64,000 nucleotides of DNA from Zygnema circumcarinatum SAG 698-1b (GCA_037447605.1 CM074810.1:372001-436000); one strand, 5' to 3'; positions 22,718 to 28,196 are shown, numbered from the stretch's first letter. The notes: generated by a model not told the origin, from the sequence alone. Program-made: numbers and translations.

Positions 22718-25700
22718 ATGGAGAAGAAGTTCGAGTACTCGGTTGACCGGCGGCTGCCGCTGTTGCAGGACGCCGACCTGCTTGACAAGGTCAGGGGGGC
22801 GCTGGGCGGCGGGAGGGAAAAAAGGGATGAACAGGAAAAAACTAACTACCTAAAAATATTTTTTTTGATTAGTTGCAAGGGGTCGTAAATTCAGAAGGTG
22901 GTTGGAATAGATCGAAAATGGCGGAAATGTTTGCTAGAAATTCTGGTAGGTTGGGGGTCTCTCTTGTAAAATCCATTTTTTTTGTAATTTATTGATTCTC
23001 GGATATGCGAAAGAGAGAGGAGGCTGCGCCTGAAATTGGTGAAGCCATGTCGTGCAGGGAGGAGTTATATATATAATTTTTTTATTTTTTTTGAAGTTTT
23101 GGTTTTTTTTTGGGAAGTCTGATAAAGGCGTTTAGCGGTGTTGCAGGTGGTGCTGCTGAGGGTGGATCACAATGTTGTCAAAAAGGGTACGCTCTGAAAG
23201 CTGTGAGAGAGGGAGAGGGAGAGGAAGAGGGAGAGGGAGAGGGAGATGGAGAGGGAGAGGAAGCGGGAGTGGGAGGGGAGGAACGGGAGAGAGAGGAAGG
23301 AGAGGGAGAGGGATAGTGAGTAGAAGAGGAGAGTGAGAGGAGAGGGAGAGGAGGCCAGAGGAAATCAGGACTCTGAAAACTGTGAGAGAGGGAGAGGGAG
23401 AGGAAGAGGAAGCGGAGAGGGAGAGGAGGGAGGAGAAAAAGTGAGGGTCTGTGACAACTGTGGGAAAGAGAGAGAGAGAGAGAGAAGAGGGAGGGAGGAG
23501 GGGGAAAAGAGGGAGGAGGGAGAGTGAGAATGAGGGAAGTGGAGGAAGGAAATTGGAAGCAGGAGGCGGCGACGGTGATTGAGAAAATGCATGGGGGGAG
23601 AGATAGGGAGGGGAGTTGTGGATTTTGATCTATCAGAGGCCATCCTTTGTATGAATGTTTCAATATTCATGATAGAAAGAAAATTGATGGTCCTATCTCT
23701 CACATGAGGTCGGATGCATGCAACTGTTGCAGGAGCCATTATGGATCAGTACCGCATTGACTGCACTCTGGCCACAATGGTAAGGCGTTGACCCCCCCAC
23801 CCCTTGCCTTTCCCCCCTCCCTGTCACTACCTCCCTTCCTCTCTCTCTCTCTCTCTCTCTCTCTCTCTCTCTCTCTCTCTCTCCCCCCCTCCAAGCCTTT
23901 GGAGCCTACTTGTGCTTATTTGTTTTCTCATGTAAAAGAGTCTAACAATACTTTTGTATTCGTTTCTGTCTACATCTCAACTCTTAAACTAATAAATCTG
24001 ACTTGTTTAAACTAGTTACATTCTGAATTCAATTAGTCAAACTTATGGCTCACTTATTCGATTGAGTTGATCAAAGCCTGCTAGTCAAGTAATTGGATTA
24101 AGTGAGCCAATGCATATTTGAAATTGATCGAATTCTTCTGCTTGAGAGGTCCAGTACAACATCATTGAGCGCGGAGGGCGGCCCATCATCATGACTCATG
24201 TGGGGCGGCCCCGCGATAAGAAGACTGGAAAAATTCTTGTTGATCAGGAAACTTCGGTTGATCCCATCGGTATGTACTCATTCTCACTCTCCCTCGTCCC
24301 TCTTTTCCCCCTCCTCCCTCCCTCACCTCTCTCTCTCTCCCACAGTTGTCACAGTCCCTTACCTTTTCTCCTCCCTTCTCTCCCTCTTCTCTTCCTCTTC
24401 CTCTCCCTCTCCCTCTCCCTCTCTCACAGTTGTCAGAGTCCACCTGTTTTCCTCTGGCCTCCTCTCCCTCTCCTCTCACTCTCCTCTTCTACGCACTCTC
24501 CCTCTCCCTCTCCTTCCTCTCTCTTTCCCTCTCCGAGTCCACTATCTGCCGATTTCTTCAGTCCATTGTTTAGGTTTCGTAGATGTTTGGCTTAACTATG
24601 TTTATGTATTAGCTGTCAGATGTATACATGTATGCTTGGGTATGTATGCATGTATCTCTGTATGCATACATGTATGTGTATGCAGGCATATGTTTGTATA
24701 TAAGTGTTATATATGAAGTAGTGTTGTTAATCTATAATTCACCTTTCCTTGCAATGCTTTCCAGTGACTTACATCCAGAGGAAGCTGCGCATCAAATTTG
24801 CGGTTCCGAACTTTCAGCCGGCGGCTGATGGGAGCGGAATATGCGATATCGACACCTCTATTAACCATCTCTTGGCGGACTTGAGGGCGCGAAAAATCGG
24901 AGGAATTTATCTCCCCAACACTCGTTGGTTTGCAGTAAGCAAATTACTTTCCACTACATTATAGCTTGCCTTGTCCCCCCCTTTTTTTTTTTCCTTCAAG
25001 TTTCCGTGTGAATATGCAAGCGTATAGAGATGCCAATGTATGGATATGCTTTTCTGTGAATCAGATCCGTTGTTTCCTTTTGCACGTCTGATTAATTTAT
25101 TATTAGTTTGTTAGTTTGGCTAAAAGAAGGTTTTCTGCTTGTTGGTGGGCAGGGAGAGGAGGACAAGGGCGAAAAGCTGCAGCGATTTGTGATCCAACTG
25201 GCGGGCTTAGCCGACGTCTTTGTGAACGACGCTTTCGGGTCCTGGCAGGTGTCTCTCTCTCTCTCTCTCTCTCTCTCTCTCTCTCTCTCTCTCTCTCTCT
25301 CTCTCTCTCTCTCTCTCTCTCTCTCTCTCTCTCTCTCTCTCTCTCTCTCTCTCTCTCTCTCTCTCTCTCTCTCCCTCTCTCTCTCTCTCCTCGTTCTTAT
25401 CTCACCCCTCAGCGAGTGCAAAACTAGCAGCTATGTCCACTTATCGCTCAGTTAACCCCCCTTCTTTTCTCCCCCCTTTTCCCCCCTTTTTTTTATTTTT
25501 ATTTTTAGCTTTTTTAACCCAATACCGAGATATATCGGGTGCAGGCCCACGCCTCCACTGTCCACATCGCGAAGGTCCTCCCGAGCTTCGCGGGCCTCCT
25601 CATGCAGGACGAGCTCTCGCACGTGCGAGCCATCCTCGAGCCCTCTCCGCCCTTTGCCGCCGTCGTGGCGGGGAGCAAATACGACACCAAAATCGGCCCT

Positions 25701-28196
25701 CTCACGGAAATTTACAAAAAGGTACGATGGTGGGATGCCCCTCTCTCTCTCGCTGTGTCTCTCTCTGTGTCTTTCTCTCTCTCTCTCTCTCGCTTTCTCT
25801 TTCTTTATCTCTCTTTTTCTCTCCCTCTCTCTCTCTCTCTCGTGGGTATTTCTCTCTTGCTCCAATGTAAAGGAAACTCTTTTTTTGGCTTGCTTTCGAC
25901 TTCCCCTGTCTTTTTTCTGAATCAGCTCTGCCTAAAGAGGGTGATATTCTGCTCAATATGGCGTTGCAGGTAGACAGCCTCATTCTCGGAGGAGTCGTGT
26001 ACAATGGTATGTTGCGAACATTTGTTACATCAATTACATTTTCTGCAATACGTTTTTTTTTTTCCTTTGTATGTCCATTTCAGTGAATTTAGGCAGTGAC
26101 ACAGAGCTCGGGGCTTGCAGCATATCTCTGCGCCAAATATGGAGTGAAAATTCGCGGTGTCTCAGACTCAGGTATGCCGTTTTTCGGAACACCTCTCATA
26201 TGTGTTCTCTCTCTCTCAATTTTCACTCTCCCTCTCTCTCTCACTCTCTCGCTCCTCTCTCCCCCCGCCCCACCTCCCCCCCCGCCCAGACTTTCTCCCT
26301 TTCCCTACCCCCCCCCCCGGGCCCCATCCCTCGTCTTCTCTTCCTCTCTCTTCTCTCCTCCCCCCCTTCCTCTCCTCTGCTTTTCCCCCCTTCCCCTCCT
26401 CCCCGTCCTTCCTCACCCCTTCCCGCTCCTCCCCCTCCCTCTCCTCTCTCACCCCCCTCTCCCCATGCCCTTCTATCGCCGGCAGATACAGAGAGATAAA
26501 ACGGACAGATGACTCCAATAGTGTACCGAACATTTCCTTCCCAAGTTCCAAACTCTGTCTAGCTATCAGTTCCTAAGCACCCAATGCCCTGCAGAGAAAA
26601 AATAACACAACAAGCATTGGCATGAAATCACATTGACAAGAGAATGAACAAAAGCATTAAGCTATTGAACAAACCCGCCAGTTATCACATCTCTTTACTC
26701 AACATATTTCTGCCTCTTTCTCGTTTTTCTTTTCCCTCTATGTACAGATGTGGAGCTAGCGAAGGGTTTGGTGGAGCAAGACAAGGAGCAGGGGAAGCTG
26801 GTGGAGCTACCGCTCCTTGTCGAGTCCGAAACTCTCGAAGGAAAGATTGAGGGAAAATATCGAACTATTTCTATCGAAGATTTCAAACCCGGAAACGAGT
26901 ACGGATATATTTTGGATGTCGATCCTGCTTCCTTTGAAAACGAGCGCGTTGCGAAAGCCATTGCATCTGCACAAACAATCTTTGTTAATGCAGTGATGGG
27001 TCTGGTAAAGTTTCTACAAACTCTAAAACCGAATATTTTCAATCGCTATTAATCGGAAATCGGAAATTTTGGAAACCCACTTCATAAGTCACCTGCAAAA
27101 CCGGCGAAAGAATCGTTTTGTAACAAAGCTCGGAATCTTAAAAAACTGAAAAGGAACGCACTTACAGCATTTCGAATAGCCTTGAAAGACCTGATGAAGC
27201 CACTGAAAACCCTCAATAGACTGTTTTTGAAAGTTTACTTATGAAAGGGCTCGTTTTTTTTTGCATTCTGGATTGAAGCAAGATATAGGGATGATGAATC
27301 GAAATGGCGGGGTGGAGAGAATGCAAAGAGATCAGGACATAAAGAAACGAATCTTGTATGTAGATGTCTGCTTTTAACGGAAAATGTGTTCTATGATTGG
27401 TTTCACAGACACCCATGTTCTCGGAAGGCACTTCGAAGTTGGATATGGTAATCGATCAGAACAAGAAGGCAAACAAATTCTATGGTGAGCACCTCTATAT
27501 GCTCTTATATACATGTTCTCTCCTTATAAGTAGGCTTGAAATATATGGAGGTTATTTTAAGTTAGTCAAGGTATTCTCTCCATAGTCCGGTTTCTCCTGT
27601 GCCTCTCTTTCTCTCTCTCTCTCTTTTTCTCCCTCCCTCTCTCTCTCTCTTTCTCCCTTCTTGCCATTCCCCCCCCCCCCCACTCCCTCTCTTTCTCCCT
27701 TCTTGTCATTCCCCCCTACCCCCCCCTCTCTCTCTCTGCAGGCCAGCTCCAAGATCAGATTTAACTTGCCCTCTAATCCCAAAACCACCTCATCAAATCT
27801 CCCGAGTCACAAAAGGAACTTATCCTTGGAGGTCCCCTTTCAAAGACACTGAAAAAATTATTCACAAAAAAGTAAACTGGACCTTCTTCTCTTGCTTCGC
27901 GAGCAGGTGGGGGAGACACTCTGTACGAGTTCAAAAGCCTCCATCCCGGGCTCTACCACGCAGCAATAGACTCTGCAAAGTACTATCTCTTCACAGGAGG
28001 AGGTACGGTTCTGAAGGTGATTGAGGAGGGAAATCCGTACGATTTGGGCCCCGTGAAAGCTCTAATGGATAATGCAATTGCCTTCAACATTCCAACTCGA
28101 GCCTCACTGGATGCAAAGCTGCAGCCCCCCCCCACAAGGAGCATTCCTGCAGCTGCTCTTTCAGGTCCCTACATTGCCACCCCTGTGTGTGCATAA
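22718..28196 (+). CDS. PGK: Atypical phosphoglycerate kinase, 475 aa, 12 exons (22718-22789, 23147-23186, 23733-23779, 24155-24269, 24765-24934, 25153-25248, 25545-25721, 25970-26006, 26121-26171, 26748-27004, 27409-27484, 27907-28196); no transit peptide
   Basis: VVLLRVDHNVVKKG, YRID, MTHVGRP, PNTRWF, FVNDAFG, AHAS, AGSKYDTKI, LILGG, IFVNAVMG, YGGGDT, FTGGGTVL; exon lengths sum to 1428 nt with consistent phases. Confidence 0.9.
23300..24510. repeat. Pair of ~240-bp inverted repeats in PGK intron 2 (~23300-23535) and intron 4 (~24278-24510)
   Basis: Reverse complement of the intron-2 copy matches intron 4, including non-microsatellite anchors CCCACAGTTGTCACAG and CAGAGTCC...CCTCTGGCCTCCTCTCCC. 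Confidence 0.75.

Follow-up and report, generated by a model that had tools for sequence, protein, structure and literature searches.

The 64,000-nucleotide stretch of the Zygnema circumcarinatum SAG 698-1b genome analysed here, called the window throughout (GCA_037447605.1, CM074810.1:372001-436000), carries at positions 22718-28196 of its + strand a gene that, judged by its sequence, is a member of PGK4A, a divergent phosphoglycerate kinase (PGK) subfamily of bacterial type. Six-frame translation and inspection of the junctions give 12 exons and 11 introns, all with GT..AG borders and consistent phases, the intron number being that claimed in the original prediction, a reading made from this DNA alone. 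The coding sequence of 1434 nt specifies a protein of 477 amino acids and not of 475 as had been stated. The introns range in length from 114 to 576 nt and many of them are filled with CT/GA microsatellites. The exons, together with an alternative last coding exon, are as follows.

22718-22789, + strand: exon 1, holding the ATG start, with the N-terminus level with the starts of the bacterial proteins
23147-23186, + strand: exon 2, encoding RVDHNVVKK; retained are the Asp and Asn by which canonical PGK binds the hydroxyl of its substrate
23733-23779, + strand: exon 3, with YRID; the catalytic Arg that corresponds to human R38 is retained
24149-24269, + strand: exon 4, with THVGRP; the basic-patch His and Arg are retained and a family-specific insert follows
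24765-24934, + strand: exon 5, with LPNTRWF; the Arg of the basic patch that corresponds to human R122 is retained
25153-25248, + strand: exon 6, ending in NDAFGSWQ; Trp-Gln stands for the canonical His-Arg and one residue is deleted
25545-25721, + strand: exon 7, with AHAST and AGSKYDTKI; both catalytic Lys are retained
25970-26006, + strand: exon 8, with the LGGVVYN loop
26121-26171, + strand: exon 9, its start fixed by transcript contigs
26748-27004, + strand: exon 10, ending in FVNAVMGL; the Asn is retained and the Glu-bearing dipeptide deleted
27409-27484, + strand: exon 11, placed by transcript contigs and orthologue alignment
27907-28196, + strand: exon 12, with GGGDT and FTGGGTVLK, then a tail of ∼40 amino acids to PVCA and a TAA stop; its start is fixed by contigs
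29113-29210, + strand: alternative last coding exon, joined to a donor after 28164 and ending in TGA at 29208-29210; contigs have loose ends at 28170 (runs X1-X3)

The window gene is genuine and is both transcribed and spliced. Four public runs belonging to three studies supply contigs that were placed on window positions 25400-28300, and these contigs skip 25722-25969, 26007-26120, 26172-26747, 27005-27408 and 27485-27906, that is introns 7-11, in every case at GT..AG borders. Intron 6 is supported as well by contigs that begin at 25541 and are preceded there by the final bases of exon 6, and one contig of 1427 nt was judged long enough to hold the entire spliced coding sequence and a leader of ∼25 nt. 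The runs themselves are only presumed to be RNA, and we regard the contigs as transcript assemblies because the introns are missing from them at the exact splice sites. The contigs cover introns 6-11, and introns 1-5 are placed by splice consensus and by the seamless exon-by-exon alignment to orthologues. Splicing at the 3' end is variable: use of the alternative exon exchanges the final 11 residues, including the PVCA end, for a distinct tail of 33 residues, and the unspliced form with the PVCA end is also present. The optional intron, between 28164 and 29113, includes a 10-N assembly gap at 28334-28343, and telomere-like AACCCTA repeats lie just past the stop codon of the alternative exon (about 29211-29250).

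Pfam PF00162 is matched by the peptides of exons 7, 6, 10 and 4 (E = 1.5e-13, 3.5e-5, 6.6e-6 and 8e-3), the weaker matches being collinear, and exon 7 on its own reaches 50.9 bits where the cut-off is 27. Exon peptides of the window gene also match solved PGKs, and PF00162 is present in all full-length orthologues. The exon 12 peptide has no match in Pfam, and NCBIfam offers no model specific to the PGK4A family, only a sub-threshold match to a PGK-TPI fusion model. The fold was examined with the Spirogloea orthologue P0251, a stand-in 67% identical to the window protein, for which the AlphaFold2 model (pLDDT 90.7, TM 0.84-0.88 against solved PGKs) has the two domains of a PGK; the top 50 PDB matches of this model are all PGKs (target TM 0.71-0.88), with identities to P0251 of 24-30%, or 28-29% in the case of the Chlamydomonas plastid PGK 7ZY7. 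Because the N-terminus of the window protein begins level with the bacterial proteins in the exon-to-family alignment, it has neither a transit peptide nor a presequence, and its sequence suggests that it is probably cytosolic. The C-terminal tail that had been described as Pro-rich does exist, ∼40 amino acids in length, but it is only moderately rich in Pro. The extreme C-terminus, (P)VCA, is common to the window protein (28120-28193), Spirogloea P0251 and Mesotaenium P0257 and is missing from land-plant and bacterial members; to our knowledge it fits no targeting or prenylation motif.

In order to compare active sites each exon peptide was added as its own row to an alignment of 69 family members and E. 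coli Pgk, with the roles of the residues as established for PGKs in general. The motifs quoted in the original prediction are all to be found in the window protein, namely RVDHNVVKK, DAFGSWQAHAS (divided after WQ by intron 6), AGSKYDTKI, VNAVMGLTP (divided after GL by an intron) and FTGGGTVLK, and the alterations that it listed, a loop shorter by one residue, the loss of the basic-patch Arg and the lack of the ribose-binding Glu, are present too. Invariant in the 69 members and the window protein are the Arg, Asp and Asn of RVDHNV, the R38 equivalent, the His and Arg of HxGRP, the Arg of LPNTRW, both Lys of AG(S/A)KYDTK, the Asn of VNAVMG, GGGDT and TGGG. The residues of phosphoryl transfer (human R38, K215, K219, D374, T375 and the Gly-rich loops) are thus all encoded in the window exons and do not vary among the 69 members, and three of the four residues of the phosphate patch are retained. 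Every family member has Trp-Gln for the His-Arg of canonical DAFGTAHR, with one residue deleted, such that Gln replaces the basic-patch Arg of DAFGTAHRAHAS (human R170) family-wide; the ribose-binding Glu of NGPxGVFE (human E343) is lost from all members in a two-residue deletion of Phe-Glu. With both residues missing throughout the family, ordinary PGK kinetics are therefore not to be assumed. A differing preference for substrate or nucleotide, as raised in the original prediction, may be read from these two family-wide changes. The alignment also contains four insertions, fixed in the family, relative to canonical PGK.

Homologues were sought with single exons and then with full-length relatives as stepping stones. 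A search of 1.84 billion cluster representatives with exon 12 gives 56 proteins, belonging to this PGK family only, most of them fragments and a few full-length (432-522 amino acids) with the same motifs. With the bacterial member P0018 as query, thousands of proteins are recovered that bear the annotation 'phosphoglycerate kinase' and belong to Thermodesulfobacteriota, Nitrospirota, Nitrospinota, Spirochaetales, WOR-3 and Planctomycetota, and a scan with one genome per species counts at least 598 carrier genomes, mostly Desulfobacterota and Nitrospirota. The motif set thus marks a clade abundant in mostly anaerobic bacteria, in agreement with the earlier suggestion of a separate PGK subfamily in such organisms. 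Searches with a plant-type fragment and then with the Ginkgo protein, bearing on the distribution among streptophytes that had been proposed as a check, return orthologues from Klebsormidium to gymnosperms: among algae Klebsormidium (two), Spirogloea and Mesotaenium; among bryophytes Marchantia, Riccia, Calypogeia, Sphagnum, Physcomitrium and Ceratodon; and among vascular plants Selaginella, Diphasiastrum, Adiantum, Ceratopteris, Ginkgo and Taxus. After the plant orthologues the next matches to the Ginkgo protein are bacterial. No angiosperm occurs among the matches that carry an organism name, several eukaryote-type matches carrying none.

Identities were obtained by tblastn of relatives against the window, summed over exons. 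They amount to 67% for Spirogloea and Mesotaenium, 64-67% for Klebsormidium, 59-68% for the named land plants, about 60% for Desulfatibacillum and 43-48% for the prasinophyte-like proteins, and for the exons taken singly Spirogloea, Mesotaenium and Klebsormidium match best. The plant-like open reading frame (ORF) fragments P0004, P0008, P0009 and P0012 begin at SLHPGLY, which is internal to exon 12 in the window gene, and this suggests an extra intron after GGGDTLQEFK in the genomes from which they come.

Two trees were prepared in which the window protein is represented by its orthologues P0251 and P0257 and in which plant canonical PGKs are not among the rows. An annotated protein of the window gene itself was looked for in the protein collection and was not among the matches. 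The first, a maximum likelihood tree (LG+C20, 71 rows, E. coli Pgk as outgroup), groups the streptophytes in one clade (SH-aLRT 99%), within which the branching agrees with the species tree (zygnematophytes, Klebsormidium, liverworts, mosses, lycophytes and ferns, gymnosperms), and contains as well a core bacterial clade (98%) and a prasinophyte-like clade (97%). After removal of one poorly predicted sequence and of near-duplicates, the second tree unites streptophyte and prasinophyte-like sequences in one clade (97.5%) that, with the root at E. coli, lies inside successive bacterial branches. The trees derive from quick searches and their outgroup branch is very long. The same very long branch parts E. 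coli PGK from the orthologues, and together with the 24-30% identity of the Spirogloea protein to solved PGKs it agrees with the claim that this is no canonical plant PGK; the outcome that had been named as refuting it, a grouping with canonical PGKs, is not seen for the sequences in the trees, where the orthologues lie far from the E. coli enzyme and canonical plant PGKs are outside the sampling. Taken together, and with these caveats, the trees favour a single transfer from a bacterium to the green lineage with vertical descent thereafter. The ancient horizontal acquisition and long residence put forward in the original prediction fit well with a streptophyte clade that mirrors the species tree and with green sequences nested among bacteria. 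PGK4A would have entered the green lineage once, before the split of streptophytes and prasinophytes, from a donor clade of the Desulfobacterota/Nitrospirota type, and would have been inherited vertically since then, with no named angiosperm protein found.

The subfamily is not new, and the window gene adds a member to the PGK4A that has already been published. Foflonker and Blaby-Haas (Mol Biol Evol 2020/21, PMC7826186) distinguished four non-canonical PGK subfamilies in algae, and the name PGK4/PGK4A, given in 2020, covers proteins of prasinophytes, K. nitens and Selaginella; these authors tied PGK4A to arsenate-detoxification clusters in prasinophytes, described PGK4B, a PGK-TrmB fusion of land plants, as the sister subfamily, found a C. 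reinhardtii pgk3 mutant to be arsenate-sensitive and stated the function of PGK4 as unknown. They further reported that streptophyte PGK4A genes are unclustered and that homologues also occur in genomes without the ArsJ-GAPDH route. Our assignment is by clade composition and not by matching accessions to the figure in PMC7826186: the best-matching algae and Selaginella form the streptophyte clade that joins the prasinophyte-like sequences. A TrmB methyltransferase domain is lacking, since translation stops after the PGK domain and the tail of ∼40 amino acids, and the frame of the alternative exon has only 33 codons.

Like the published PGK4A proteins the window protein stands alone, is PGK-like and differs from canonical PGK, and like the streptophyte genes among them the window gene is not clustered with ArsJ or GAPDH3. 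It differs from the PGK4A described earlier in being of zygnematophyte type and only 67% identical to Spirogloea and Mesotaenium, and from PGK4B (rice LOC_Os10g30550 type) in having no methyltransferase domain. Chlamydomonas PGK3 (Cre07.g354250) is likewise a non-canonical algal PGK-like protein but belongs to a different clade, here set apart by its description as resembling homologues of Actinobacteria, Chlamydia and Deinococci (PMC7826186). The similarity to the 'phosphoglycerate kinase' of Thermodesulfobacteriota and Nitrospirota, for example that of Desulfatibacillum aliphaticivorans (P0092), holds over the whole length, in the same length class and at about 60% identity, with every signature motif, insertion and deletion in common; the bacterial genes, unlike the window gene, have neither introns nor the C-terminal tail of ∼40 amino acids. 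A literature search on the Desulfatibacillum enzyme gave nothing useful, and in the arsenic papers that were found PGK figures only in general statements or as a loading control. With canonical PGKs (E. coli Pgk, human PGK1, the plant cytosolic and plastid enzymes; PDB 1VPE, 2WZB, 7ZY7) the protein shares the two-domain fold, as modelled for the orthologue, and the residues of phosphoryl transfer. It is set apart from them by an identity of 24-30% (orthologue), by Trp-Gln and the one-residue deletion in the DAFG loop, by the deletion of Phe-Glu after NGPxGV, by RVDHNV in place of RVDFNVP and by several insertions.

Gene neighbourhoods were compared in the window, in a relative from a picoeukaryote and in bacteria. 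On a 77-kb Mamiellophyceae-like picoeukaryote contig (L006) the relative P0209 lies between genes for an MFS transporter and a GAPDH (8375-12523), and this MFS-PGK4A-GAPDH arrangement is the cluster published in PMC7826186, where the MFS protein is ArsJ-like. No homologue of either the L006 MFS or the L006 GAPDH is detected by tblastn in the 64-kb window, in which the genes adjoining the window gene are eukaryotic. The prasinophyte-like PGK4A proteins contain an insert rich in Cys (GCGCIP...), and their C-terminal tails are Cys-rich as well; speculatively, these could bind arsenite or metals. In 10 Nitrospirota loci (L039, L045, L048, L050, L051, L061, L062, L081, L085 and L089) one or two phosphofructokinase (PFK) genes come directly after the PGK-like gene and share its strand, within about 10-130 bp in 8 of the 10, and the genes apparently form a co-transcribed operon; in L039, L051 and L061 one PFK is of the pyrophosphate (PPi)-dependent type, above the NCBIfam cut-off. 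Such a linkage fits a role in sugar-phosphate metabolism. Transporter genes of the TRAP type (DctP/Q/M) are near the PGK-like gene in three Desulfobacterota (L007 8924-11934, L008 8689-12066 and L005 2002-3039), adjoining it in two and ∼7 kb away in Desulfatibacillum. Among the conserved bacterial neighbour families that were identified, seven of them named by Pfam and one without a match, none is an arsenic-resistance family.

We consider it reasonably probable, at roughly 0.6, that the window gene is an intact and expressed member of PGK4A, probably cytosolic, and that it encodes an active kinase of PGK type. Phosphoryl transfer of this type is to be expected because the residues of canonical PGK chemistry are all retained. 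The protein would act as a two-domain hinge enzyme that moves the γ-phosphate of a nucleotide to the carboxyl of 3-phosphoglycerate (3-PG), or of a very close analogue, and back; the Trp-Gln patch and the Glu deletion would then probably tune affinity for substrate or anion and for nucleotide and would not be signs of decay. From sequence we infer the catalytic activity, the substrate, the cytosolic location and the physiological role of the window protein. Several observations weigh against this picture of a PGK-type enzyme acquired once from bacteria. The equivalents of R170 and E343 are missing from every member, the nearest solved structure is only 30% identical and no member of the clade has been solved. 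The first tree left the relation between prasinophyte, streptophyte and bacterial sequences unsettled, and in both trees orthologues stood in for the window gene. Among 84 bacterial loci there is neither a universal neighbour nor a gap-pgk-tpi operon, and the sole genetic evidence from algae concerns PGK3, a member of another subfamily.

One alternative reading, which concerns physiology and is compatible with ordinary PGK chemistry, is that the protein is an accessory enzyme of arsenate tolerance that acts together with an ArsJ-type exporter and a GAPDH able to handle arsenate, for instance by recycling 3-PG from the hydrolysis of 1-arseno-3-phosphoglycerate. The prasinophyte-like relative flanked by an MFS transporter and a GAPDH, as in PMC7826186, speaks for such a role, as do the Cys-rich inserts and tails of prasinophyte members and the arsenate sensitivity of the C. 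reinhardtii pgk3 mutant (PMC7826186), although the mutated gene is PGK3, of a different clade. The missing MFS and GAPDH homologues in the 64-kb window speak against it, and so do the unclustered state of streptophyte PGK4A, the occurrence of homologues in genomes without the ArsJ-GAPDH route (PMC7826186) and the lack of any arsenic-resistance family among the conserved bacterial neighbours. There is also a parallel in distribution, in that a named angiosperm orthologue is lacking and the arsenite exporter ACR3 is, according to a published abstract, conserved in non-angiosperm land plants, but it is a weak one because many genes are missing from angiosperms. On balance we hold the arsenate role to be possible and rather unlikely. 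A kinase that has acquired a new function and is no longer a 3-PG kinase, acting on another acid whose distal group is less negative than phosphate or using another donor (GTP or another nucleoside triphosphate, or PPi), strikes us as more doubtful. Invariance of both active-site changes from bacteria to plants does point to selection for a specific property, and the four fixed insertions relative to canonical PGK go in the same direction; yet the apparatus of phosphoryl transfer has been kept in full, as have three of the phosphate patch's four residues. In yeast PGK mutation of the Arg equivalent to R170 reportedly raises Km and does not abolish activity, which also counts against a new function. 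Co-orientation with a PPi-dependent PFK in some Nitrospirota could be taken as a hint of such a function, as could the TRAP-type organic-acid transporters near the gene in three Desulfobacterota, but the linkage to PFK suits plain glycolysis or gluconeogenesis equally, and the TRAP neighbours are limited to a few related genomes. A broader form of the idea makes the whole Trp-Gln, Glu-deleted clade a functionally distinct class of PGK-fold kinase, with another acid or an acyl-arsenate-type substrate or with PPi or GTP as donor, operating alongside PPi-dependent glycolysis in, for example, Nitrospirota, captured once by the ancestor of green plants and retained over a span longer than 1 billion years; we offer this as a speculation of low probability.

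It is very improbable that the protein is a non-catalytic pseudo-enzyme with a structural or regulatory role. Two residues conserved in canonical PGKs are indeed missing, and in the sister subfamily PGK4B the PGK-like domain is joined to a methyltransferase, but all residues of phosphoryl transfer are invariant from bacteria to gymnosperms, a conservation that an inactive site would not be expected to show. A pseudogene was also considered and is rejected on the evidence of splicing and conservation. Bacterial contamination or an assembly artefact, which might be suspected from the identity of about 60% to bacterial proteins, has next to no probability: the nearest relatives are zygnematophyte orthologues inside the streptophyte clade, the introns carry the CT/GA microsatellites of the flanking DNA, the neighbouring genes are eukaryotic, and the eleven spliceosomal introns, removed in the transcript contigs, lead us to reject it.

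For the window gene itself the outcome is mostly confirmatory. What goes beyond PMC7826186 is the invariance of the signature substitutions from bacteria to Ginkgo, the placement of the green-lineage sequences as one clade nested in bacterial diversity, the wide occurrence in Desulfobacterota and Nitrospirota with linkage to PFK in the latter, the retention up to gymnosperms without a named angiosperm match and the alternative C-terminal exon. A strongly conserved family common to sulfate reducers, nitrite oxidisers, prasinophytes, charophytes, bryophytes, ferns and gymnosperms poses a biochemical question, whether its members are PGKs whose kinetics have changed or kinases that act on something else, and Marchantia and Physcomitrium are tractable models in which the proposed link to arsenate can be pursued.

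Two further features of the window deserve mention. Long (CT)n/(GA)n microsatellites crowd the introns and flanks of the gene (22400-28400), giving strong local GC and AT skew, the longest of them a (CT)n tract of 122 nt in intron 6 (25252-25373). Upstream, at 4154-9145, are two tandem copies of long ORFs (5442-6704 and 7766-9142, plus 4154-5230) that encode DEAD-box helicase and zf-HIT domains, which looks like a local duplication.

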